A stretch of DNA of 64,000 nt from Hyaloraphidium curvatum SAG 235-1 (lineage: Eukaryota > Fungi > Monoblepharomycota): positions 992,001 to 1,056,000 of the forward strand of contig JAIVFI010000003.1 in assembly GCA_025558095.1 (NCBI GenBank). Reading direction: 5' to 3'. Shown here piece by piece: positions 8,367 through 60,815 of the stretch. The number at the start of each line of letters is the position of its first letter. Position 1 is the stretch's first letter. The notes under the pieces are model-generated. The model did not search any database, was not told where the DNA came from, and saw only the letters and a program-made list of their open reading frames with translations. The translations under genes and the position numbers were made by a program.

Positions 8367-8655
8367 CGTGCTGGTTGGGATGAATGCCTCGTGGCCAAGG
8401 TGGAAGCGGTGCCACGTCAGCCGTGGCAAAGCAGAACAGAAAGATCAACGAATTGGGCCTGCTTGCTTGACAGGTAGCTCTTCGAGGCTGGAAAAGCAGA
8501 CAAAAAGGTGGTTCACGATCCCGGAGAAGCTAGGCTCGGTCGTCGCCTCCCGTTTGAGGGAGACAGCTGCGGCTCCTTGGCGAAGATTCGAAGGAGCAGC
8601 CAGGTTCGGCAACTGTCACCAGCGGCCTTCCTCAACGACACGCTGGCCCTCCCAA

Positions 8656-10318
8656 ATGAAGCCCGTCGAGCTGAATCCGCGAGAGCTCCTCGCTGCGTTC
8701 CCCGGCGGCCAGCGCAAGCCTCCTTTCCGGCCGCGCGTGCCGCGAGGGGCGGCTCCTTCGGACGACCCCGCCGACGCGCATTCGACTGCGAACCAACCGT
8801 CTCCCGCCGTCGCCGCGCTCGATGCGGCACGGGCCGCCGATCCACTATCGCCGCCGGTGATGTTTGCCGCGCTGGACTCTTGGCCGGGCTCCCGCGGCCT
8901 CGCGGCGCTGCTGCGGGTGCAGCTCGCGCTCGGTCGGTTCGGCGCGCGCCCCATGCTCCGATTCGCCTGCGCCTACTGGCCGGGCTGCCTGTTGTCGGTC
9001 GCCGTGTGGGACTTTGGGGGAGACCGATTTTCGCAGCGGAACCTCGCCGTCGGGACCGCCGCGTCGCTCGTCTTTGCCATTCTCGGGCTCCTGCCCTTCC
9101 TTACACCGATCGTACTGTCATATGGCATGCGTGGGCTTGGTGCAATGGCGACCGGACGAGCTGCTGCCCCGCCAAAGCCGGACTTCAACCTGCACGCCAT
9201 GGCGGGTATCGTTCGCTGGATCCAGCTCGTAGGATCGCCGGAGCAACAGCAAGATACACCGCATCTCGCTTCCAAGGACTTCGATATCGAGACATCTGCT
9301 CCCCCGCAACATTCTCTTGTCCTCCTCGCGCATGAGGACGGCGACTCGGCCTGCCCTTGCCCAAGGCCAACCTGCGCTGGCTCCCTGCTGGGCGCCTCTT
9401 CCACGTTCGCCTTCCTGGACCTATCGATCAAGATGCTTTTCGCCATCTGGCTCACCCTTCTCTTCTCTTGGACGCCTCTGGTCACCCTTGGGTCCCAAAC
9501 CTGGAGAGTCTGGTGGGGGGCCGTGCTCGGCGTCGCCGCGCTGCTGGGCATGTTCGTCTTCATCGTCCTCAACAACCTCGTCCGCCGCATCACCAACATC
9601 CGGCTTCTCGCCCTCCAGGGCCGCATCCACCGGCGCCTACTGGCGATTGCGCTGGAGGACCTCGTGGAGCGCTCCGCCCTGGCCCTCTCAAACGGGAACC
9701 CGACGGAGTCCTATTTGCCTCCCGAACCTGAGCCCTACGAGGTACTGCATGGCCTTCTGGCCACGGCATGGCGCACGGGTTTGGAGTTTTTGGCCTTTGG
9801 CCGCCTGGGATACGTCATTTTCCTCGTCGTGTTCATCATCTCCGCCGCGATCGACGCCATCGGGGCCGGCTGCATCCCGCTGTGGTGCGTCGTCCTCACG
9901 ACCGCCTCGTACCTGCGTTCACCTCATTCCCATCTCCAGGACCATCACCGGCTTCGCCTACATCTCCACCCTCTTCGCCGCCGACATCGTCAACGTTGCC
10001 GCCTCCAATGACCAGATCGCCGTCGCCACGCAGCTCATGGACCGCGCGCGGACCGACCTGCAGTCCCTCCTCGTCCGATCGGCGCTTCGCGGAAGGGGCG
10101 GCTCGCCCGCGGACGCGGCGGCGTCGCGGCACGCCGATCTGCTGGCATCGCTGGCGGGGAGCTCCGAGGCGCACATGGGCACGCTGCTGGGGTTCAAGGT
10201 GACCTTTGGCGTCGTGAGGCGGATGCTGGTGACCATCGTCACGGTGGCCGTGGCGCTCTACACCGTGCTGAGGGGTTCGGGGCAGTACCTAACAGTTGAG
10301 ACCATGTGCCCGGGCTGA
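8656..10318 (+). CDS. 7-TM membrane protein, 7TMIC/GRL-like family copy A (intact); intron ~9885-9940
   Basis: Seven hydrophobic segments, H-x6-CPC-x4-C loop motif and C-terminal LLGFKVTFGVVRRMLVTIVTVAVALYTVLRGSG..TVETMCPG. Paralogous to 28234, 50030 and 59799. Confidence 0.8.
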
Positions 10319-10668
10319 ATGGCCTAGGCTAGAAGCAAGGGACGAAGAACTGGTTGCGTCGAGCATGTTTCCGTTGGACGAGTCGGAGAGGGACGCAAAG
10401 ACATGGAGGGGAAGAATGCGTAGATCGCAAAACTATGCCCACGGATGGACAGCAACCCACTTCGCTCCGGCCGGGTCTCAACGAGAATGGAACAACAACG
10501 ATCACCACTGCTTCCGTTGGAAAGCTTCATCCTGCCACATCGACTGGATGCCGGGCAGACGCGCGGCTTTGGCCGGCTCCACTAGACTCCGCAATCAAGG
10601 ACCTACAGACAATAGCATAACATCCTTCATCGGTCCCGCCTCCCCTACACGTGCCGTCCAAGACCGAC

Positions 10669-28233: not shown

Positions 28234-29853
28234 ATGGAATCCGAGTCAACCGCAATGGAATCCTTCGGCGGGACCGTCCAGCAGCCCCTGCCGCGGCTCT
28301 CGGAAAAGGAGCTGCTTGCCCTTCTCCCCGCGCCCACGCCGCACGGAATTCCACCGCCCTGGGTTGCAGCCGGCGGTGCAATTGACTCAGAAGAAGAAGA
28401 AGACGATGATCTGGCGGCATCTGCTCGTCGCGTGTCGCCGCTAACGCCAAAAGCGATGCTGGACTCTTTGGCCACTCACCCAGGCCTCAGGGCCATCGCG
28501 TGGGTCGCAATCAAGTTGGAGCCTTACGGGAAGTATGTCTTCTTGCATTGGATCGCGTGGTGTCTCGTGTTTTTCCCGGTTCTCGCTGTCTGTTGGGTCT
28601 ACGGCGGGGATCTCTTTGGGACGCGGCAACTGGCCTTCGCAACAGCGGCAAGGACGCTCGAGGTCTTCCTCATTGGTCTTGTGTTCATTGGCTCCGGGTT
28701 TCAGCTCCAAAATCTGGAAACGACTAACGGGGGCATGAAACGGCGGCGCGACGAGGAGAAGGGCATATCCGGCAACGACGTCGAACCGCCTGTCATGGAC
28801 GACGACCTCTTGGCTCCTGTGGCGCGATGGCTTCAGCTGGTTGCCGCTTCGGATGCTGCCGGTGCTCAAAATGGTGATGATGTGCCTCCCCTAATTGCTC
28901 ACGTCGACCGCGATCCGTACTGCCCTTGTTCCCGACCTTCGTGCCTTGGCCCTTTGCCTCGTCGGTTCAGCATCGCCTTCGTCGCCTTTTTCTCACTATT
29001 TTCGCTTCCTGCCGCCATTACCATGTACACGATCCTCGGAGCCTACTCTGCGTTGTTTACATTGGCAGCCGATACATGGACGCACGCCTGGAGTGCCATC
29101 GTTTGCGTCATCTTCATCTTGGTGCAGAGTTCCTACTACTGTGTCGCCCAACTGATCCTCCTCCGAAACAACTCTATCGTGCGCCTTGTGAGCCTGGATA
29201 CGCGTGTTCAAATCCGAGCCTTTCGCATCGCGTTGGGCTCCCTTATGGCTCGTTTCCGCGCCGCCGAAAAAAGGGGCGTAGACATTCCCCCGGAATCTCT
29301 GCCGAGCCCCGCCGACACGGAGCTGTACATCACTGTTTATCGCAGCCTTTCACCAACCTGGCGCCATCAAAAGGGCCATGACGGCGTGACACAAGCCATC
29401 ACAATCGGCCTTCTGTTTGCGCACTGCATTGTGCCTTTCGTCTACGTTGCCGGGGGCTCCTGTCTGCCAGCTTACAACATCGTGTGCATCGGTTACTTCG
29501 TGTGCCAAACGCTGTTCCAGCTCGTTGGCCTGGCACGGAGCAACGCGAAGCAGGACGCCGTGGCGGGCCTGTTCCGGCAAGCGCGCGACGAGCTGCGGAT
29601 GCTGGCGCTGCGGCTCGGCCCCGAGGGTTGTCCGCCGCTCAAGGCGCGCGCGAACGATACCGTCGCCGTGCTGACGACGATGCTCGAGGGTGCCGAAGGT
29701 TCGCGCGCGACCTTTCTCCGCGCGCCCGTGTCGATGGCGCTCATTCGGACGCTCGCGGCGACGATGCTGACGGTGACGTTTGCGGCGTTCGGGCTGCTTA
29801 GGGCCGCGGGTGTATACGTGACGGTGCAGAGTGTGTGCTGGCCGACGGCGTGA
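28234..29853 (+). CDS. 7-TM membrane protein, 7TMIC/GRL-like family copy B (intact, intronless, 539 aa)
   Basis: Seven TM segments, HVDRDPYCPCSRPSC, GGSCLP and C-terminal FLRAPVSMALIRTLAATMLTVTFAAFGLLRAAGVYVTVQSVCWP. Confidence 0.82.
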   Translation: MESESTAMESFGGTVQQPLPRLSEKELLALLPAPTPHGIPPPWVAAGGAIDSEEEEDDDLAASARRVSPLTPKAMLDSLATHPGLRAIAWVAIKLEPYGKYVFLHWIAWCLVFFPVLAVCWVYGGDLFGTRQLAFATAARTLEVFLIGLVFIGSGFQLQNLETTNGGMKRRRDEEKGISGNDVEPPVMDDDLLAPVARWLQLVAASDAAGAQNGDDVPPLIAHVDRDPYCPCSRPSCLGPLPRRFSIAFVAFFSLFSLPAAITMYTILGAYSALFTLAADTWTHAWSAIVCVIFILVQSSYYCVAQLILLRNNSIVRLVSLDTRVQIRAFRIALGSLMARFRAAEKRGVDIPPESLPSPADTELYITVYRSLSPTWRHQKGHDGVTQAITIGLLFAHCIVPFVYVAGGSCLPAYNIVCIGYFVCQTLFQLVGLARSNAKQDAVAGLFRQARDELRMLALRLGPEGCPPLKARANDTVAVLTTMLEGAEGSRATFLRAPVSMALIRTLAATMLTVTFAAFGLLRAAGVYVTVQSVCWPTA

Positions 29854-34760: not shown

Positions 34761-35998
34761 TTGGACGCCGCGTGCGGCCACGCCCACGTGCCGCCGTCTC
34801 GCAACCCGGGCCTCGCCCCGCTGGACCTCACGCCGCCCGCGGGCTCAGCATGGGAGCGGTTCGACGCCGCCAGCTTCGTCGACTACGTCTGCAAGACGGT
34901 CGAGGAGGTCGCGCCGCTGCACGACGCCTACTTTGCCGAGTCACCGCCGGACAGCTGGGACGTCATGGAGCGGCTGCAAGCGCGTACTACTGTCCGCTCA
35001 ACCACGCTGCGTTTGCGGTCATCCTCATGGAAGGCGAGAGGTCGTGGAATGAGGCCGTGGCGGAGCCGCAGATGCGGAGCACTTTGGAGGTCTTCTTCGA
35101 CGGCGGACAGCTCCCCGAGGGCCCAATGCCCGAGAAGATGTGGATGGCACTGGCCGTCGCCCTGCACCGCCGGATCTACCACCACCTGCGCAGGTGCCTA
35201 GTCGAACCCGGCAACCTGGAGCGTCGCGCGGCATGGGGCGTCTTTTCGCTCCTCGAGACGGACGACTTCCGCGACCCCGTCATGAGGCACAACACCGTGC
35301 TCTGGGACAGCTGCTACTGCTGCACCTTTTCCGAGGTCCTCCCGCTCATGACCACGCTGGCGCAGGCCCGCCCCGTCCGGAGACGAATCGCAGAAGACGT
35401 CGAGTTCCTGGACGTCTGGCCCTCGCGACCGTGCTGCAGCCCGTCTTCCTGTTGACCTGCCGGATGTACCAGGGCGCCGTCCCCGCCTCGGCCTTGGTCA
35501 ACAACGACCCCGCCAGGCCCATGCTTGCCGAAGCCGTCGCCGAGCTGGACCTCGCCACCTCGCTCCTGGACATGGCCGCGACGGAGCACCCCGGCCCGTG
35601 GCGGCGGCACACCCGCGCGCTCGCCGCCGCGGGCCGGTTCGCCCCCGGCGCGGCGCTCTGCGCGGCCCTGGGCGGGTTCCTGGACCGGAACGGCACGGAC
35701 CGGGGGCATCCGCAGCACGAGGCGCTGCACGAGCTGCGGCACCGGCTTGCACAGCTCCGCGAGGCGCTGGGTCTCCGCAGGGGCGGTCTGTCCGACCACG
35801 ACAGGGAGTGGAAGGCCACGCTCAGGACCACGGGCGACATCACCGACACGTGCGACAAGTGCGGCAGGGTGCCGGAGGATGGACACAGGTTCAAAAAAGT
35901 GCGCGAGGTGCAAGGCGGCCTGGTACTGCGGCGCCGAGTGCCAGCGCGAGGCGTGGAAGGCGTGGCACAGGGAGGTCTGCGTCGAGGTGGATGCTTGA
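34761..35998 (+). pseudogene. MYND-finger family copy 1 (3 frameshifts, no in-frame ATG)
   Basis: HVPPSRNPGLAPLDLTPPAGSAW..., LHRRIYHHLR..RRAAWG, HPGPWRRH..AGRFAPG and CDKCG..CARCKAAWYCGAECQREAWKAWHREVC. Frame breaks at ~34978, ~35413 and A6 35893-35898. Confidence 0.82.
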
Positions 35999-41141: not shown

Positions 41142-41489
41142 CGCGGATCTCGCCGAGAGCACGCGCGGGAGGCCGCCGGAAACCGCGTCGACGGACGGAG
41201 CGGGAGTGAATGCGCGGGATTGCCGGCGGAGAGGGCCGGCGCGGGGGCAGAGCCCGCGTGGCGCCGCGGGGGACGTGTCACGTGACGGGTGGAAGTCAGG
41301 CCCTGGATTGGAGAGCCGACCGCGCCGTGACGCTCCCGAATCCAATCCAAGCCATCCGACTCCCACAGCAGTGGGCCTCAATCAGACAGCAAAATGGAAT
41401 CAAGAAGTTGCGTTGATAATGGAACTCGCTCGAATCATGGAACAGAACTGCTCAAGTCCGAGCCTCATCATCTCGACGGCATCAACATC

Positions 41490-42770
41490 CCCGATCTCGA
41501 CGCAGACCTCCTTGTGCTACGCTTTCCACGCCTCGCGCTGGCAGACAGCACCGCAGTACCAGGCCGACTTGCACCGCGCGCACCGCTTGAACTTCTGCCC
41601 CTCCTCGGGCACCTTGCCGCACTTGTCGCACGTGTCCGCGATGTCGCCGGTCCGCAGCGTCGCCTTGGTCTCCCGGTCGTAGGCCGTCAACGCCGCGCTC
41701 TTGGAGCCCAGGGCTTCTTCCAGCAGCTTGAGCTCGTGCCCGAGGTTGTGCACGGTGTAGAAGAGGGGTGGGTCCCGACCCACATCGTGGCGCTCCAGGA
41801 AGTGGCCCACGGCATACTGCAGCGCGAAGCCCGGCGCGAAGCGGCCCGCCCGTCCGAGGGCAGTATTGTGCCGGCGCCACGGGGTCGGGTGGTCCGCGAC
41901 GATGTTCGTCAGGATGGGCAAGGAATCCGCCATCCGGTTCACGGCCCTCTCAAGGATCGGCGGTCCCTCATCGACAACCCTGTCGTCCGGAATCGGGCCG
42001 GCCTGCAACGACATGATCTTGCACGCAGCAAAGAAGTCCGGTTGGAGAAAGATGCCGAGCGCGAGCCTGTCCAGAAGCTCCACATCTTCGGCAACGCGAC
42101 GCCGTGCGGGACGGGCTTCCGTCATCACTCTCAATAGAGACTCCGTCGTATAAAAGGTGAAGAAGTACGTGAAGTCCCACCAAAGCGTGTTCTGGGCCAT
42201 TTCTTGGTGGCCAAAGTTGTCGGTGGCGAGGAGCGAGAACGCTCCCCAGGCCGCTCTCCGTTCGAGGTTTGCAAACTCGAGCAGCGGTCTCCGGACGAGA
42301 TGATAAGCCCGTCGATGGAATGCCACGGCCAATCCGAGGACCATGCCCTCGGGCATGGCGTGCTCAGGCAGGTCTCCGCCGTTGAAGAACGGCTTCAGGA
42401 CGCTGCGAAGCTCCTGGTTCCCCAGAGCTTCTTTCCAGAGGTCGTCGGTCCGCACGCTGTTTAGCGTCCTTGCGCAGCGGACCATGTGCTCGTTCAGAGC
42501 CTCGCCAGCGCGCACAATGCTGGATCGAACTTCGCCCCAGTCGTCCGGGCGTTCCTCGGCAAACAGAACAGGGTACAAATGCACTGTCTCTCTCCGCACC
42601 GCATCGAGTAGAGGTGGTCCACGAAGCCGGCGGCGTCGAACGCGGCCCAGGGAGAGCCCGGCGGAGCGGTCAGGTCGATGGGCGCGAGGCCCGGGTTCCG
42701 CGCCGGCGGGCCGTGATCGTGGCTGTGGCCCCCGTGGTCGTGTCCGCCATGGTCGTGGTCGTGTCCGGCT
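41490..42770 (-). pseudogene. MYND-finger family copy 2 (frameshift ~42610, premature TAG 41517-41519, 5' stop)
   Basis: HGGHDHGGHSHDHGPPARNPGLAPIDL..FVDHL shifts frame into LLDAVRRE... The MYND finger ends AWKA*HKEVC (TGG>TAG). Confidence 0.82.
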
Positions 42771-43413: not shown

Positions 43414-45303
<1,890 letters not shown>

Positions 45304-45690
45304 TCACTTCCACGGGGATGGAGAATGCTGATGCGGTCGGCGACGCGTGAATTGGGCGATCCCGCGGGCGATCCGGGCGGCAACGGCGGCGGGTCCGCGG
45401 CGGAGTGTCGGATCCGCGGACGGCGACGGCGCGCGATTCGGCGTCCGGGAGGGGCGGGCACACCGTCAGCCACGAGATCTTCCGCGAAACGAGGCCGGAG
45501 CGACGGCGGCAGGACGCACCTCGTGCCCGGCACGCGGTGTTTGTGCGGGGTGGCGCGCGGACCCTGTAGACGATCCGTGGATCTGCCGGGGTCCTCCCGA
45601 ATCTCCAAACCGCGGACTGCGAGCTCGCCCCGTCGGTGCGACACAGACAACGTGTTCAACGCAAATCCAACAACGAGCATGACGACACAG

Positions 45691-48600
45691 CTACAACAAC
45701 GTGCGCGGCCTCTTGCCGCCCCCCTCGTCGTCCCCCTGCCCGGTCCGCCCCCGCTTCTTCGGGCTGGGAAAGCCCTGGCTCCCGGCCCCGGCCTGCGAGT
45801 TCGAGTCCACGTTCTCGGCGTCGGAGGCGGAGCCGGGGTCGGGGCGGGCGACGGGGCGGGAGGGGGAGGAGGCGGGCGGGCGAGATGGGGAGGCCGCGGG
45901 CGTCCGCGAAGTAGGGGACGAGCCGAGGTCGACGCGGGCGAGGCCGCGGGGAGGCGAGGCGGCAGGCGCGCGCGAAGGGGAGGAGCCGAGCTCGGAGCGC
46001 ACAGGCAGGCGAAGCGGCGACGGAGCGGGGTCGAGGCGCGCGGCGGGCCGCGGGGGCGAGGAGGCGGCCGGCGTGGCCTGACCGGACGGCACCTCCAGGT
46101 TCCACAGCCGCCGGAACACCCTCCTCGCGTGTTCGAGGAACCTCCCCGCCCTGCGCGACGGGATCATCGACATGTCCGCGTGGCCCCTGCACCACAAGCG
46201 ACGGGTCAGTCCGGATCGCCGGCCGAGCAACACGCGGGGTACGCACTCGTTGCGGTTCCAGTCCTCCGCCGCCGCCTCGATCGCCCCGCCGTACTGCCGC
46301 AGCTTCCTCCTCGCGAGAGCGAGCATCTCCGGCCGGCCGGCGTAGTGCGCCGCGAGGTCCCGCCCGAGGATCTCCTCCGGCCCGCGGAGGGGGGCGGAGC
46401 GGCGGGTGCGGGTGCGCGGCAAGGTGGGGGTGCGGGGGGTGGCGGGGGCCGGAGGTACCGGGGCGGGGTCCTCGGGCTTGGGCGTCGGGGGTGCGGGTTC
46501 GTCGTCCGCCGCAGGCAGCTCCTCCGCGGCGGGCGCAGGCGCCGGGCTCTCGGGAACCAGCGTGGCCGCGCTCCCCGTCCGCTCGCGCACAGAGCGCCAC
46601 AGCGCCCCGTCGATCCTCAGCACCATCCTGGGCTTCTCCGCCGCGGGGCCCGGGGCAGGATCGGGCGCAGCAGGCACCACCGGCTCCGGATCCTGCACGC
46701 CGGCCGGGCCCACCACCTCCTCCTCCGCGCGCACCCTCTCCGCGAGCCCGGCGGGCAGCGGCACCGCCTCCGGCCTCGGCCTCCGCAGCAGCGCCTCCGC
46801 CTCCGCGAGCACGGCATCCAGCTCGGGATCGGCGCCGGACCCGGGCCGCGCGACCGCGGCGGGGATCGGCGGGTGCACCGCGGTAGGGAGCAGCGCGGGG
46901 ATGGGAGGCCGAACGGAGGCGGGAGGCTTCACGGGGGGAGGCGGGCGAACCAGCACGGGCTCCACCGGCTGCTCCTGCGCGTGCGGGCGCGGCGGGGGCC
47001 TCGGCATCCCCGTCCGCACGCAAACAGCCCCGTTGGCGGGTGCAAACACCGGCACCGGTGTCTTCCCCGCCGTCCACCTTCTCTGCGCCTCCGCTGGCCC
47101 GGGGGGCCGCGGCGCGGGCGGGGTGCCGATCTCGTGGTACCACCACCGCACGGGCGGGCGCTGGGAGCCGGGGGAGCGGAGGAACGGGGAGGGGCCGGGC
47201 GGGAGGGGAGGCGGAGGGGGAGGGGGGAGGGAGAGCAGGAGGGAGGGGGGGATGTAGCGGGTGCCGCGCGGGGAGGGGGAGGGGGGGTCGAAGGGGGGGG
47301 AGACGGGGAGAGGCCGAAGCGCGGGCGTCGCGGAACCGGGGGTGGAGGAACTGGGGCGGGCGGAGTTGTCGGCGGCGGGAGCGGGTGGGAACGAGGCGCG
47401 AGGGTTGGGGATGGCGATCGGCGGGGGCCGCGGGGGCCGCTGGGCTGCAGAGGCGGTGGTGGCTTGCATCGCGGCATGCACGGCGTGCGCCGATCCCGGG
47501 GTGCCGAGCCCGGGAGAGAAAGGCGGAAAGGCGGGGGTGCCCCGGGGCGAGATGGCCGATCCCGGTCCGCGCTGCTCCGCTCCAGCAGGAGGCGGGACGG
47601 AGATCGGCGGCGGCCGCGGGATGCGCGGGGCGCCGTGCTGCGCCGCGTCGCGGGCCTGGGAGGCCTGCAGGACGAGGTGCGCGGGGGATGGCCGCGCGAG
47701 CCGTGCGACGGGGCGGGGGAGCTGCTGCGCGGGGAGGCCGGGCCGCGTCGCGACGGGGCGGGGGGCCTGCGTCGCAGCGGGCCGGGGCGGGGGCGTTGCC
47801 ACGGGCCGCTGGGGCTGGGCGGCAGTGGGCCGGGGGGGCTGCACAGGGGGCCAGAAGCCAAGCTGCGTAAAAGAGGGGGGCTGCGGCCGCCCCGCAGCCT
47901 GCAAGGCGGCGAGCTGTTGCGGGAGCTGCTGCAGCATGGGCGAAGAGTTCGAAGGCCGCGCGGCCTGCATGTCCTGATGCGGCGCCGGCGCGGGCCGGAA
48001 GCCGGGCTGCGTGGCCGTGGCGTGGCCCCCGGTGCGGAAGGCGGCGATTTGCTGCGACATCTCGCGCTCCCTTTCGAGCGCCGCCCTGGCCGCCGCGAGC
48101 ATGTGGTCCGCCTGGCCCTGCGTCATATCCCCAGCCTGCACCCTCCGCTCCAGGATGCCCTCGAGGTGGCCTGCCTGGTGCAGCTGCGCCAGCCTGTGGT
48201 TGGGGGCGGGCGGCTGGGGCGACTGCTGGACGGGTGCGCGCGGTTGCAGGGCCGCGGACCGCTGCGCCGCCATCGCGGCGTGGAAGTCCGCGCGGCTGTC
48301 CGTGTGCGCCGCTGCGGGCGGCACGGAGATCTGCGCGACGGCCGAGGGGCCGAGCGCGACGAGGGCGAGCATGTCGAGGCCCGACTGCTCCAGCGTGACG
48401 ACCCTCTGCCCCGCGACCGGGGGCCCGGGGGCGGCAGGGGCAATGCGGTCCACGGGTGGTGCGGGGGGAGGGGCGTAAGGGGCGGTCGGGGCCGCCGCGG
48501 GCGGGGCAGGTGCGGATGCCTGCGCGGAGGCGTCAGCCCGGCCAGCTCGGCCAGCAACCCCGGAACCCACCTCCCCGGGACCGCCATCGGCGCACGCCCT

Positions 48601-48897
48601 GCCGACCCAGCACGCCAGGCACGTCGGCGCGGCCCCGCCCGCCGAGCAGTACGCGCTGGCCGGCGCCACGCCGCACAGCGACCAGAGGGGCGGCCGTGCC
48701 CCGCTGCCGCCTTCCGGGGCGCCCGCTGCCGGGGCGGCGGGGGTTTCGGACGCCGCCGACGCCGCTGCCGGCCGCGGCGGGGCCCCAATGGGGCGTCCGG
48801 CCGAGGACGCCGGGGTCGCTCTCCGCACTTGCCCGCCGCCCTCGGCCTCCCTTCCCCTCCCTTCGCCCGTCCCCTCGCGGCCCCCGCCGTGAGTCAT
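45691..48897 (-). CDS. Large Pro-rich hypothetical protein with Cys cluster and TAF12-like helical motif; start and introns uncertain
   Basis: Long ORF with coding-like low complexity. Contains LC..YC..CLACW..C and RLAQLHQAGHLEGILERRVQAGDMT, plus a C-terminal helical segment. Confidence 0.6.
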   Translation of the reverse strand: MTHGGGREGTGEGRGREAEGGGQVRRATPASSAGRPIGAPPRPAAASAASETPAAPAAGAPEGGSGARPPLWSLCGVAPASAYCSAGGAAPTCLACWVGRACADGGPGEVGSGVAGRAGRADASAQASAPAPPAAAPTAPYAPPPAPPVDRIAPAAPGPPVAGQRVVTLEQSGLDMLALVALGPSAVAQISVPPAAAHTDSRADFHAAMAAQRSAALQPRAPVQQSPQPPAPNHRLAQLHQAGHLEGILERRVQAGDMTQGQADHMLAAARAALEREREMSQQIAAFRTGGHATATQPGFRPAPAPHQDMQAARPSNSSPMLQQLPQQLAALQAAGRPQPPSFTQLGFWPPVQPPRPTAAQPQRPVATPPPRPAATQAPRPVATRPGLPAQQLPRPVARLARPSPAHLVLQASQARDAAQHGAPRIPRPPPISVPPPAGAEQRGPGSAISPRGTPAFPPFSPGLGTPGSAHAVHAAMQATTASAAQRPPRPPPIAIPNPRASFPPAPAADNSARPSSSTPGSATPALRPLPVSPPFDPPSPSPRGTRYIPPSLLLSLPPPPPPPLPPGPSPFLRSPGSQRPPVRWWYHEIGTPPAPRPPGPAEAQRRWTAGKTPVPVFAPANGAVCVRTGMPRPPPRPHAQEQPVEPVLVRPPPPVKPPASVRPPIPALLPTAVHPPIPAAVARPGSGADPELDAVLAEAEALLRRPRPEAVPLPAGLAERVRAEEEVVGPAGVQDPEPVVPAAPDPAPGPAAEKPRMVLRIDGALWRSVRERTGSAATLVPESPAPAPAAEELPAADDEPAPPTPKPEDPAPVPPAPATPRTPTLPRTRTRRSAPLRGPEEILGRDLAAHYAGRPEMLALARRKLRQYGGAIEAAAEDWNRNECVPRVLLGRRSGLTRRLWCRGHADMSMIPSRRAGRFLEHARRVFRRLWNLEVPSGQATPAASSPPRPAARLDPAPSPLRLPVRSELGSSPSRAPAASPPRGLARVDLGSSPTSRTPAASPSRPPASSPSRPVARPDPGSASDAENVDSNSQAGAGSQGFPSPKKRGRTGQGDDEGGGKRPRTLL

Positions 48898-49259
48898 CGC
48901 AGCGATGATGCGGCGCAGCGGGTTGCCGCCCGGGTGGAGCGGGTCCGACGGGGTGGAGTGGGGGAGAGAGGTAGTATCAATTTGGGGACAGGAGTCCCGC
49001 TGAGTGTGGGCTGGCGGAGAAGCACCTTGACTCCGAACCGCGAAACCAATCCCGCCCAAAACTCGGGATTGCGGGTCACACAGTTGCAGATAACTGCTCA
49101 TGAAAGGCAGATCGAAGTGGGTCATGGCCATCGACGGGCTTTCAATCGCGGGCCGGCTTCCGCGGGGTCCAGGATCTCTGCGGATCAGGCCAGCCCGGGA
49201 ACGACGGCATCCACGCCGCCCTCGATCGCAGGAACTCGCTGCCGAGCACAATCTCCGCC

Positions 49260-49690
49260 ATTGAGGGGTATCCTCCAGGGCCTGGCGGCTCCCGACCGTC
49301 CCCCCGCCCCGCTCCCATCACTCCGGGCGCGCGGCACGCTCGTCAGCACAGCGACGGCTCGCCCGACCGCATTCAAGGCATTATTTGCGCATTATCTGTC
49401 GGTTGAAGGTGCGGGACTTGCCGTCGCTGAACTGCTTTGCTCCCGACGGACCCCCCGGCGCCCCATTGACGCGGACGGCCGTCAGCACAGCGTCGGTTCC
49501 CCCGAGCGCATTTGGGGCATTTATGGCATGTTCTCTGCAGGTAGGAGGTGCGGGGTTTGCCGTCGCTGTGCTACTTTGCTCCCGATGGACCCCCCGCGCG
49601 CCGCGGACGCGGGCGGAACGGCCATCAGCAAAGCGTCGGTTGCCCCAGGCGCATCCGGGGCACTTTAGGCATATTCTCTGTGCCAGCTCT
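49260..49690 (+). repeat. Diverged tandem triplication, ~140-bp unit
   Basis: GTGCGGGACTTGCCGTCGCTGAACTGCTTTGCTCCCGACGGACCCCCC (~49409) vs GTGCGGGGTTTGCCGTCGCTGTGCTACTTTGCTCCCGATGGACCCCCC (~49548). TCAGCA[C/A]AGCG[A/T]CGG recurs at ~49343, ~49482 and ~49625. Confidence 0.85.
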
Positions 49691-50029: not shown

Positions 50030-50560
50030 TCACAACCCTGCCGGACAGTACGAATCCAGCACGACCCGGATCCCGATCCCGTTCAGCAGGCCCCAGAGCG
50101 CAAACAGCACCGTGAGCAACGAGACGACCAGCGCCCTGGCGACGCCGTACGAGACCTCTATCCCCGCGAACCGCGCCGGTTCGGCGGATGCGGCGAAGGC
50201 ATCGAGGCGGCGGGAGAGGGAGGAGAGGCCGTGCTGCAGCGCTTGCAGATCGGGCGCCCGGTCCGGCGGGGGGCGGACCGGGGCGGCGAGGGAAAGCAGC
50301 GAGAGGGCCTCGGAGGAGCCGGCGCGGACGACGGCGCAGACGGCCCCGATCCGGGCGTTGGCAGCCGCGAGGTCGAGGAGGAACAAAACGATCATGATCA
50401 GCCACCAGGCCAGGAAAGCCACCTCGATCCGGAGCTCTGAATCGCCAAGGCGATGGCGGAGTGGATTTGACGGAAAGAAATTGACGGCGGACACAGCGCT
50501 TTGGCGCGAGAACCTAGTGGCATCGATCTACCTCGTGTATTACGACGCCGACGGAAATAC
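50030..50560 (-). pseudogene. 7TMIC/GRL-like family copy C: 3' remnant (TM5-TM7 only)
   Basis: IEVAFLAWWLIMIVLFLLDLAAANARI..RFAGIEVSYGVARALVVSLLTVLFALWGLLNGIGIRVVLDSYCP. Frameshift near 50432; 5' two-thirds absent. Confidence 0.75.
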
Positions 50561-50581: not shown

Positions 50582-50746
50582 TCCCAGGAGGAGGGGCACA
50601 AGTTCAAGAAGTGCGGCAAGTGCAAGTCGGCCTGGTACTGCTCGGCAGAATGCCAGCACGAGGCGTGGAAGGCGTGGCACAGGGACGTGTGCACCGAGGT
50701 TGCGACCGTTGCGGACGAAGGCGCGGCGGGTCCTTCGCCAGGATGA
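50582..50746 (+). pseudogene. MYND-finger family copy 3: 3' remnant (second half of MYND finger)
   Basis: EEGHKFKKCGKCKSAWYCSAECQHEAWKAWHRDVCTEV is nearly identical to the end of the intact copy at 56382, but the first CxxC is missing. Confidence 0.82.
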
Positions 50747-56381: not shown

Positions 56382-57830
56382 TCAAACCGACGGCCCCGCG
56401 CCTTGGTCCGCAGCAGTAACTTCCGTGCACACATCCCTGTGCCACGCCTTCCACGCGTCCCGCTGGCACTCGGCCGAGCAGTACCAGGCCGACTTGCACT
56501 TGCCGCACTTCTTGAACTTCTGGCCCTCCTCCGGCACCCGGCCGCACTTGTCGCACGTGTCCGAGATCCTGTCGAGCTTCTTCGCGTTCGCCTTGGCCAT
56601 CTTGTCCCAATCCGTCAGCTCCCTCGTTCCGATCCTCAGGGCGTCCTTGAGCATCGCCAGCCTGTGGTTAAGCTGGTGGCGCTCGTGGTGCAGGTCCGGC
56701 CGCGCCTCGAGCTCCTCCCACCGGGCGAACCGCCCGATCAGCGCGCACAGCGAGATGCAGGGGGCGAAGCGGCCGGCGCGGAGCAGCGCAAGCGTGTGCC
56801 TTCGCCAGGGGGCGGGGTGGTTCCCGACGATGTTGTGCAGGGAGGCGAGGAAGTTCATGAGCTCCCGCAGGGCGCCCTCGGCGATGCTCGAGTAGAAGCC
56901 GACGCCCTCGGCGGGGAACTCGACCGGCGGGGGATGGTCGATGAGCCGCACGGCGATGTAGAAGTCCGGCATGAGCATGAGGCCGACTGCCATCCTGTCG
57001 AGCAGTTCGACGTCCTGGGCCATGCGGCGCCGCACGGGGCCTGAGTAGCTCATCCTGCTTATGATCTGCGCGACCAGCTGGAAGCTGCGCTGGTAAGTAT
57101 TGTTCCATAGCTCGAAGCGGGCCTGCGCGTGCTCGTCCCACGCGCGCATGCCGTCGCCGTCGATCCCCGCGAGGCCCCACGCCGCGCGGCGGTCCGTGTT
57201 GGCGTACTCCCAAACGACGAGCCGAAGATGGTGGTATATCCGGCGGTGGAGCGCCAGCGCCAGGCGCTGGAACATGTCCTGCGGCATTGGTTCGTCGGGC
57301 ATCGGCCTCCCGTCCTCGAAGAAGGCGGACGAGTTGTTCCGAATGCGCTCCCAGTCCTCGCGCGCAAATTCTCTCCACCTCGCCTTCTCGTTGTCGTCCA
57401 TGTAGAGGATCGTGATGTAGCTGCGGACGTGGTCGACGGGGCACCAGTAGCTCCTCTCCAGGTGAACCAGCTCCTCGCCGTCGTCCGGCGGGTACTCGGC
57501 GCAGAAGAACGCGTCCTGCAACGGCACGTTGCCCTGCAGCAACGTGCAGACGTGGTCGACGAACGAGGCGCCGTCGAACGCGGCCCAGGGCGAGCCCCTG
57601 GGCGGGGCGAGGTCGATGGGCGCCAGGCCCGGGTTCCGGGCGGGCGGGACGTGGTCGTGCCCGTGCTCCCCGTGGCCGTGCCCACCATGGTCGTGGTCGT
57701 GGCCATCATGGTCGTGGTCGTGGCCGTCATGACCGAATCCGCCGTGGCCGTGGTCATGTCCGCCGTGGTCGTGCCCGCCGTGGCCGTGCTCGCCGTGGTC
57801 ATGCCCACAGTGGTCGTGGGAGTGGGACAT
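56382..57830 (-). CDS. MYND-finger family copy 4 (intact, intronless, 482 aa; His-rich N-terminus)
   Basis: ~55-aa H/D/G repeat, family motifs PPARNPGLAPIDL, LHRRIYHHLR and HPAPWRRH, and C-terminal CDKC..CGKC..YCSAECQ..W..H..C. Confidence 0.88.
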   Translation of the reverse strand: MSHSHDHCGHDHGEHGHGGHDHGGHDHGHGGFGHDGHDHDHDGHDHDHGGHGHGEHGHDHVPPARNPGLAPIDLAPPRGSPWAAFDGASFVDHVCTLLQGNVPLQDAFFCAEYPPDDGEELVHLERSYWCPVDHVRSYITILYMDDNEKARWREFAREDWERIRNNSSAFFEDGRPMPDEPMPQDMFQRLALALHRRIYHHLRLVVWEYANTDRRAAWGLAGIDGDGMRAWDEHAQARFELWNNTYQRSFQLVAQIISRMSYSGPVRRRMAQDVELLDRMAVGLMLMPDFYIAVRLIDHPPPVEFPAEGVGFYSSIAEGALRELMNFLASLHNIVGNHPAPWRRHTLALLRAGRFAPCISLCALIGRFARWEELEARPDLHHERHQLNHRLAMLKDALRIGTRELTDWDKMAKANAKKLDRISDTCDKCGRVPEEGQKFKKCGKCKSAWYCSAECQRDAWKAWHRDVCTEVTAADQGAGPSV

Positions 57831-59798: not shown

Positions 59799-60815
59799 TC
59801 ACCCCGGACACACCGTCTCGGGCGTGAACCCCACCCCCGCCCCCCTCAGCAGCGACCACAGCGCAACCGCCACCGTAACGACCGTCACCAGCATCCCCCG
59901 CACGACGGCATACGACACCCTGAACCCCAGCCACGCGCCGCGGACCTCCTCCGCGGGCTCGAAGGCCGCCAGCATCCCCGCGTGGTCCTCGAGCGCGCGG
60001 CGCACGGCGTCGGGGACGCCGCGCCGCCCGGCGGCGACGAGGAAGGAGGTGCGGTGGGAGCGGTACAGCGCCGCGATGCGGTCGTTCTCGGCGTTGGCCG
60101 CGGCGACGCTGAGCATCTCCTGGGTAAACACGAGCAGGAACAGCACGGCGAGATCGAGGATCCAGAAGGGCACGCAGGATGAGGAGGCGGCGGTGATGAC
60201 GGCGCAGACGGGGATGAAGCAGGCGAGGGCGGCGAGGGAGGCGCGGCCGGAGGAGATGTGGGCGAGCTCGGTGGGCCAGGTGCGGACAAGGGAGAAGTGA
60301 TAGGAAACGTAGGGTTTATCCGCGGGGGGCGGCGGGGCGGAGCCGCGCGCGGCGCAATCTCGGAGGCGGGCAAAGGTGTCAAGGAGCATCAAGTCCGAGG
60401 CACGTTGCCGCAGCCGGCCCTGCAGCCGCGAAAGGGGGGTACTGGGGTTATTCCAAGCAAAGAGTAGCGACGCCGTTGAGCACCCACGTGGCCGGGATCG
60501 TCAGCACGGAGCCGCATACGGCGGCGAGCAGGCGGTACGCCGTCCACCGCGCCGACCCCGCGAGGGCGAGGTGCACGCGCGTGAGGCCGCGCAGAAAGGG
60601 GTCGTTGGAGAGGCCGTCGAGCAGCGCAGCGGCGTCCATCAGCGGGTCGGGCAGAGCGGCGCTCGCCGGATCGGCCCGTGCTCGACGTCCCTCTCGCCTC
60701 CTTTGGAAGACGCGTCCACGCCGTCCGCGCCCGCCGGAAAAAGGGCACGCTCTTCGGCCCGCGACAGGCGGAAGGGCGGCGGGCCGTCCATTGCGCCGGC
60801 ATTCCCGCCCTCCAT
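59799..60815 (-). pseudogene. 7TMIC/GRL-like family copy D: frameshifts plus internal deletion
   Basis: N-motif FRLSRAEERALFP, then a frameshift to DPLMDAAALLDGLSNDPFLRGL. TM1 joins out of frame to WNNPSTPLSRLQGRLRQR. C-terminus WLGFRVSYAVVRGMLVTVVTVAVALWSLLRGAG..ETVCPG is intact. Confidence 0.75.

Follow-up and report, generated by a model that had tools for sequence, protein, structure and literature searches.

The DNA considered here is a 64-kb window (positions 992001-1056000 of contig JAIVFI010000003.1, hereafter C3) of the genome of the aquatic monoblepharid fungus Hyaloraphidium curvatum SAG 235-1, an assembly of 31.9 Mb in 55 contigs with a G+C content of ∼67%, and it carries four members of a large gene family encoding proteins predicted to span the membrane seven times. 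An initial annotation of the window had described four dispersed paralogues and had proposed that they share the seven-transmembrane ion channel (7TMIC) fold of the insect odorant receptors (Or) and gustatory receptors (Gr). A hidden Markov model (HMM) of the family, built from one of these copies (copy B) and 39 full-length paralogues taken from the H. curvatum genome, detected exactly four loci in the window, designated copies A, B, C and D, with E-values of 6e-157 to 2e-26. In pairwise BLASTP, copy B matched A, C and D with E-values of 5e-24 to 4e-8, confirming that the four are real paralogues. Their mutual identity is 27-31% and they are not recent local duplicates, because each is more similar (51-67% identity) to a paralogue in another part of the genome. 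A further exact match to the family pattern H-x3-D-x2-C-x-C was present at C3:988624 (- strand), 3.4 kb ahead of the window start, so the local density of the family is greater than four per 64 kb.

Copy B is an intact, intronless gene of 539 codons at 28234..29853 (+), with an open reading frame that matched the HMM over 28282-29847 (E = 6e-157). Its His/Asp/Cys motif, from His223 to Cys237, lies at 28900..28944 (+), coincides with the genome pattern match at C3:1020900 and occupies invariant columns of the family alignment. The sequence signatures noted initially were recovered. The N-terminal motif L-x3-E-x2-A-x-[FL]-P was present in A, B and D, and its Pro is 96% conserved in a set of 137 members. 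The terminal segment G-x2-V-[ST]-x3-x-R was found in all four copies, and the A-x-x-N described after the sixth transmembrane segment (TM6) corresponds to a family A-A-A-N in which the Asn is 98% conserved.

Copy A (8656-10318, +) consists of two frames joined across an intron. Exon 1 (8656..9884, +) encodes the N-terminal motif, TM1-TM5 and the start of TM6 and ends in phase 2 inside a Trp codon; it matched the HMM over 8656-9897 (profile positions 5-384, E = 2e-83) and is 58% identical to paralogue P0046. A 55-nt phase 2 intron with GT..AG ends follows inside TM6, at 9885..9939 (+). Exon 2 (9940..10318, +) supplies the remainder of TM6 and its cytoplasmic extension, which bears the conserved Asn, and then TM7a, TM7b and the C-terminal Cys before the stop codon (HMM match 9941-10315, profile 381-501, E = 3e-32; BLASTP against B, E = 2e-12). 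The motif H-x3-D-x2-C-P-C-x4-C of the TM2-TM3 loop is encoded at 9331..9375 (+; genome pattern match C3:1001331). The two exons were searched, aligned and counted separately, rather than as a joined spliced protein.

Inspection of the public run X1 revealed a 1,428-nt contig that covers 8614-9883 without difference and resumes at 9939/40 to continue to 10096, the gap being the 55 nt with GT..AG ends, which this contig skips. Another X1 contig matched the copy A region at 10101-10500. The type of run X1 is a guess (“RNA?”), and it is the intron-less contig that suggests RNA; copy A is therefore very probably transcribed and spliced. The 1,428-nt contig begins 42 nt 5′ of the copy A ATG (8614-8655), which sets a minimum length for the 5′ untranslated region. 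The spacing between the conserved Cys and Asn that flank the splice position is 28 residues in 118 of the 137 members, and removal of the intron from copy A yields the same value (4 residues and the split Trp codon from exon 1, followed by 23 residues from exon 2). A shorter GT-AG intron of 31 nt at 9909-9939 was rejected because only the 55-nt intron restores this spacing, and the X1 contig likewise shows the intron starting at 9885.

Copy C (50030..50425, -) comprises ∼130 codons covering TM6, TM7a, TM7b and the C terminus and matched only profile positions 382-501 (50422-50039, E = 2e-26). The ∼400 N-terminal codons are absent, and the match to the nearest paralogue, P0143 (530 residues), is confined to residues 401-528 (50% identity). 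Upstream of copy C, the opposite strand carries the 3′ remnant of a gene for a MYND-domain protein. Copy D is preserved in three pieces. The start, with the N-terminal motif L-S-R-A-E-E-R-A-L-F-P, was recognized by translation of 60720..60791 (-); it is 62% identical to residues 1-24 of the nearest paralogue, P0085, and its frame, which is not that of the following piece, ends in a stop codon. The N-terminal part (60469..60693, -; HMM match 60693-60472, profile 31-104, E = 7e-9) corresponds to P0085 residues 40-99. The C-terminal part, in another frame, runs from the TM4 extension to the stop codon (59799..60467, -; HMM match 60455-59802, profile 280-501, E = 2e-57) and is 59% identical to P0085 residues 250-469. 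P0085 residues 100-249 have no counterpart, and ∼150 codons have been deleted, since the N- and C-terminal parts abut. The deletion takes in the end of TM1, TM2 and TM3, and with them the His/Cys motif, and there are two changes of frame. Given these lesions, copies C and D are pseudogene remnants. The suggestion that half of the window copies are decayed was thus correct for C and D and not for A, in which the frame change is an intron. Remnant D retains an open frame of 197 codons (59799-60392, -) covering TM5, TM6, TM7a and TM7b, with its start placed at a TTG that has an ATG immediately after it.

The size of the family was assessed in three ways. A genome search with a single protein gave 83 matches at E ≤ 0.001 from the 80 scored of 691 first-look candidates, nearly all of them open frames of 490-800 codons without stops. 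The 40-member profile, compared with 1.84 billion cluster representatives, matched 467 proteins at E ≤ 1e-3, 417 of them at E ≤ 1e-10. Of these 467, 150 were listed, and ten sampled across the list (top, middle and bottom) were all H. curvatum “hypothetical proteins” (DFJ74DRAFT_...). A DNA pattern for H-x3-D-x2-C-x-C had 435 matches in the genome and 40 in the reversed control. Taken together, the genome search, profile count and motif count indicate about 400 family genes in H. curvatum, or roughly one per 80 kb of the 32-Mb genome, in agreement with the large repertoire initially surmised. The genes are mostly intronless and encode proteins of 480-550 residues; some are clustered, with four to six within ∼33 kb, and others are dispersed. 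No member was seen outside H. curvatum, the source having been checked for 10 of the 467 profile matches. Word-index homologue searches each returned the query and one H. curvatum paralogue, a result that says nothing on other species, and of the 159 pattern matches from a metagenome scan with six aligned sequences, none was confirmed as a relative.

The family-mean hydropathy profile contains seven hydrophobic segments. An AlphaFold2 model of copy B, computed from the paralogue alignment, had a predicted local distance difference test value (pLDDT) of 90.3 and a predicted template-modeling score (pTM) of 0.88, and a model of a second member only 25% identical to B had values of 88.0 and 0.88, respectively. 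Both models contain seven membrane helices in a common layout, in accord with the segment count of the initial annotation. TM1 and TM2 are long, a loop of 77-90 residues precedes TM3, a cytoplasmic helix follows TM4, and TM5 and TM6 form helices of 45-49 residues that reach far past the membrane. A separate TM7a helix is joined by a short structured linker to the last membrane helix, TM7b, and small β-bridges are present at the TM5-6 loop and in the C-terminal tail. In the model of B, helices span residues 285-312 and 319-347, 364-408, 413-461 and 467-489 (TM7a), followed by a loop and TM7b at 501-524. The anchor-domain layout and the TM7a/7b split were judged from the secondary structure and the spans of the fold alignments.

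The distribution of charge was asymmetric, with 0.115 Lys plus Arg per residue in the predicted inner flanks versus 0.050 in the outer flanks, a bias that holds in 133 of the 137 members. This computed prediction indicates an N-in/C-out topology, as had been anticipated. Predicted inner loops are long (medians of 77, 75 and 67 residues for TM2-3, TM4-5 and TM6-7), and the outer segments are short (medians of 8, 12, 4 and 14 residues for TM1-2, TM3-4, TM5-6 and the C-terminal tail). The distribution of conserved cysteines, with a His and three Cys inside and two Cys outside, fits the same orientation. With reference to the 7TMIC criteria of Benton et al. 2023 (PMC9998090), the family displays seven membrane segments, a predicted N-in/C-out arrangement, inner loops longer than outer ones, and extensions of TM4-6 together with the TM7a/7b split.

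Foldseek comparison of the B model with the Protein Data Bank (PDB) returned as its top five structures Gr64a, BmGr9, AgamOR28, BmGr9 and Gr43a, with probabilities of up to 1.00 and TM-scores of 0.23-0.48. Shape searches of the ESM Atlas gave a cnidarian cluster (TM-scores of 0.53/0.69), the plant family DUF3537 (0.52/0.62, 363 residues aligned), Gr64f (0.47/0.50) and one 7tm_7 cluster, and DUF3537 clusters made up 4 of the 30 nearest neighbors by language-model features. The proposal of a 7TMIC fold is supported by these matches to Or/Gr structures and to DUF3537 and Gr clusters, and on the evidence of the models the family is likely to possess this fold, which is that of a superfamily comprising insect Or, Gr and Orco, the gustatory receptor-like proteins of animals and plant DUF3537.

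Seven transmembrane helices alone would also permit a divergent member of a known transporter or G protein-coupled receptor (GPCR) family. Searches against Pfam, NCBI protein names and PDB sequences matched no transporter and no member of another known family, and the charge bias indicates an N-in orientation, the opposite of that of GPCRs, which makes this explanation highly improbable. In fold, in topology and in the lack of a transporter match, the results agreed with the initial annotation.

By far the most conserved helix is TM7b, with an entropy of 1.64 bits versus 2.8-3.2 bits for TM1-6. Its conserved face comprises Arg505, Thr510, Thr513 and Gly517 (numbered as in B, where residue 517 is Ala), and the linker Gly that precedes it is 95% conserved, B having Arg there. 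Besides TM7b and the 7a-7b linker, conserved residues occur in TM7a and in the extensions of TM4 and TM6; near-invariant among them are Arg324 and Arg328 (TM4 extension), Asn437 and Ala450 (TM6 extension) and Leu480 (TM7a). Just ahead of TM3, on the predicted cytoplasmic side, His223, Asp227, Cys230, Cys232 and Cys237 are 93-100% conserved, the His and three Cys of the loop motif being 99-100% conserved in the 137 members, and the loop that bears them is modeled with a pLDDT of ∼96. The His and three Cys probably form a zinc site. A second conserved pair, Cys410 in the TM5-6 loop and Cys535 in the C-terminal tail, is predicted to lie on the outer side and is probably joined by a disulfide. No mention of the His/Cys motif was found in the 7TMIC papers searched, and neither “zinc” nor “cysteine” occurs in Himmel et al. 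2023.

Several observations weigh against the interpretation of the family as 7TMIC-fold receptors. The Foldseek E-values were only 0.025-0.3, none reaching ≤0.001, with TM-scores below 0.5, and both AlphaFold2 models were built on paralogue-only alignments. A Pfam search with the 40 members at E-values of up to 10 returned no 7tm_6, 7tm_7, Trehalose_recp or DUF3537, and Pfam searches with the four window copies likewise gave no sequence link to 7TMIC families. Neither the family profile nor a single-protein search found anything relevant among PDB sequences, and PF12056 and PF08395 had no match in the six-frame translated genome, in a search run without a positive control. The TM7 motif of Grs and GRLs, T-Y-h5-Q-F, is absent; the TM7b consensus, R-T-x3-T-x2-T-x3-G-L-W-x2-L-R, contains neither the Tyr nor Q-F. 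Evidence of expression is limited to copy A and comes from the one run of guessed type. Finally, under the N-in model, conservation in TM1-6 is greater in the outer halves (2.75 bits) than in the inner ones (3.27 bits, p = 5e-7). Insect receptors bind ligands in the outer membrane halves, and the most variable part of TM1-6 had been expected there; the conservation found is the reverse of what a highly variable ligand pocket on the outer side would produce. The difference is clear in TM2, TM4 and TM5, whose outer halves have values of 2.4-2.6 bits and inner halves 3.4-3.5 bits.

The sequence results, together with an identity of just 6-14% to Or/Gr chains and the low TM-scores, could mean that the resemblance is not homology. 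Long helices might have matched by chance or convergence, or AlphaFold2 might be biased toward a learned fold, in which case the proteins would constitute an unrelated seven-helix family. Set against this, Or/Gr representatives all ranked first in three separate searches with two members only 25% identical to each other, and they aligned over ∼300-345 residues spanning all seven helices, whereas unrelated structures aligned over ≤256. A separate library, moreover, gave DUF3537 and Gr clusters at TM-scores of 0.5-0.69, and the shared traits are unusual ones: the N-in orientation, the TM7a/7b split, the long TM4-6 extensions and the strongest conservation in TM7. A resemblance without homology is accordingly improbable.

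H. curvatum is a non-motile planktonic cell, with no obvious chemotaxis for such proteins to serve. The family could have the 7TMIC fold and not consist of chemoreceptors at all, being made up instead of constitutive or otherwise gated channels, of scaffolds, or of proteins of cell-cell or self/non-self recognition or defense, and its high copy number would then have a cause other than diversity of ligands. The greater conservation of the outer halves of TM1-6 is in keeping with such a role, and the invariant His/Cys motif in the long TM2-TM3 loop suggests interaction with a partner or cofactor in the cytoplasm. For most 7TMICs outside insects (DUF3537, PHTF and unicellular gustatory receptor-like proteins (GRLs)) no function is known either, and several do not act in chemosensation (PMC7746228, PMC9998090). 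The pattern of ∼400 paralogues at 25-35% identity that combine a conserved pore-like helix with a divergent bundle is nevertheless that of a receptor repertoire, and the nearest solved structures are all ligand-gated channels, so that a wholly non-chemosensory role appears rather unlikely. On balance, the ∼400 genes probably encode 7TMIC-fold membrane proteins that may serve as a channel or sensory repertoire. By analogy with the solved structures, the chances that the members form a channel are about even; that they make up a chemoreceptor repertoire can be suggested tentatively.

Insect Or, Gr and Orco proteins are Class-A 7TMICs, solved as tetrameric ligand-gated cation channels (for example 6C70, 7LIC, 8VC1 and 8JM9). 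In the solved proteins, TM7b forms the pore and the cytoplasmic helices form an inter-subunit anchor domain (PMC9998090). The H. curvatum family resembles them in its seven transmembrane segments, N-in charge bias, short outer and long inner loops, long TM4-6 extensions, split TM7a/7b and maximal conservation in TM7, and in being very large and very divergent with pseudogenes among its members. It differs in having no sequence similarity detectable by HMM or beyond the low identity of the structural alignments, in being ∼100 residues longer with an N-terminal extension of ∼85 residues, and in its TM2-TM3 loop of 77-90 residues with the invariant H-x3-D-x2-C-x-C-x4-C. Its genes, in addition, are mostly intronless and fungal.

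The published fungal record consists of SpunGRL1 and SpalGRL1, candidate chytrid GRLs found one in each of two Spizellomyces species, which keep only one of the four TM7-motif positions (Benton et al. 2020, PMC7746228). Like them, the present family belongs to a fungus of a zoosporic lineage and was recognized from its topology and predicted structure and not from strong similarity in sequence; unlike them, it numbers ∼400 genes instead of a single gene per species. Plant DUF3537 (PF12056) is a neighbor in structure and in language-model features, yet its Pfam model matched none of the 40 members, nor the genome. DUF3537 is present in 4-12 copies in plants, and Thecamonas has six GRLs (PMC7746228). 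The PHTF-like Class-B proteins combine the standard 7TMIC architecture with a long intracellular TM2-TM3 loop (Himmel et al. 2023, 10.1101/2023.08.30.555482), a property shared by the H. curvatum family (median 77 residues), although no PHTF Pfam match was obtained in the 40 members and no PHTF appeared among the listed Atlas clusters. “Fungi” in the summary figure of that study denotes Chytridiomycota and Blastocladiomycota (10.1101/2023.08.30.555482). The computations support the view that the family is a lineage-specific, sequence-orphan and hugely expanded variant of the 7TMIC kind.

The window also contains a second multi-copy family, of His-rich proteins with a MYND zinc finger at the C terminus. 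Three copies, full or split and 38-58% identical, are located at 56385-57830 (-), 41481-42733 (-) and 34776-35995 (+). The 3′ remnant of 50 codons mentioned above (50588-50737, +) is 86% identical to the intact copy and stands tail-to-tail with remnant C, with a short GGTCT-type pentanucleotide run between the two. Elsewhere in the window, in a region of up to 78% G+C (44524-49668), two frames without stop codons, 1,714 and 1,186 codons long, overlap on opposite strands. The one on the minus strand is rich in Pro and Ala, and at most one of the two can be a real gene; long open reading frames alone therefore mean little in this genome.

Returning to the 7TMIC-fold interpretation, the solved Or/Gr proteins suggest how members of the family might work. 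Subunits would assemble into tetramers through the conserved cytoplasmic helices, TM7b would line a central cation pore, and the divergent TM1-6 bundle would set what opens it, the whole constituting a large sensory repertoire that evolves by birth and death. In its fullest form, the proposal is that a non-flagellated planktonic fungus independently built ∼400 ligand-gated 7TMIC channels, a sequence-orphan branch with a cytoplasmic His/Cys3, possibly zinc-binding, module; this is put forward as a possibility, and a doubtful one.

Outside animals, 7TMICs have been described as single genes or small families with functions unassigned (PMC7746228). No published report of a non-animal repertoire of this fold on such a scale was found, nor, in the literature searched, any link between Hyaloraphidium and GRLs, odorant receptors or 7TMICs. 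The ∼400 genes would thus be the largest non-animal family of the 7TMIC fold in the searchable literature. If the proposal is correct, the repertoire equals or exceeds most insect Or plus Gr sets, and massive chemoreceptor-type expansion of this ancient channel fold would not be an animal invention. H. curvatum, unicellular and genetically simple, would then be a system in which the tuning of such channels could be studied. The family also provides a microbial model for work on gating, assembly and ligand tuning in the 7TMIC fold. The finding raises the question of what a non-motile fungus senses, or does, with so many variants.
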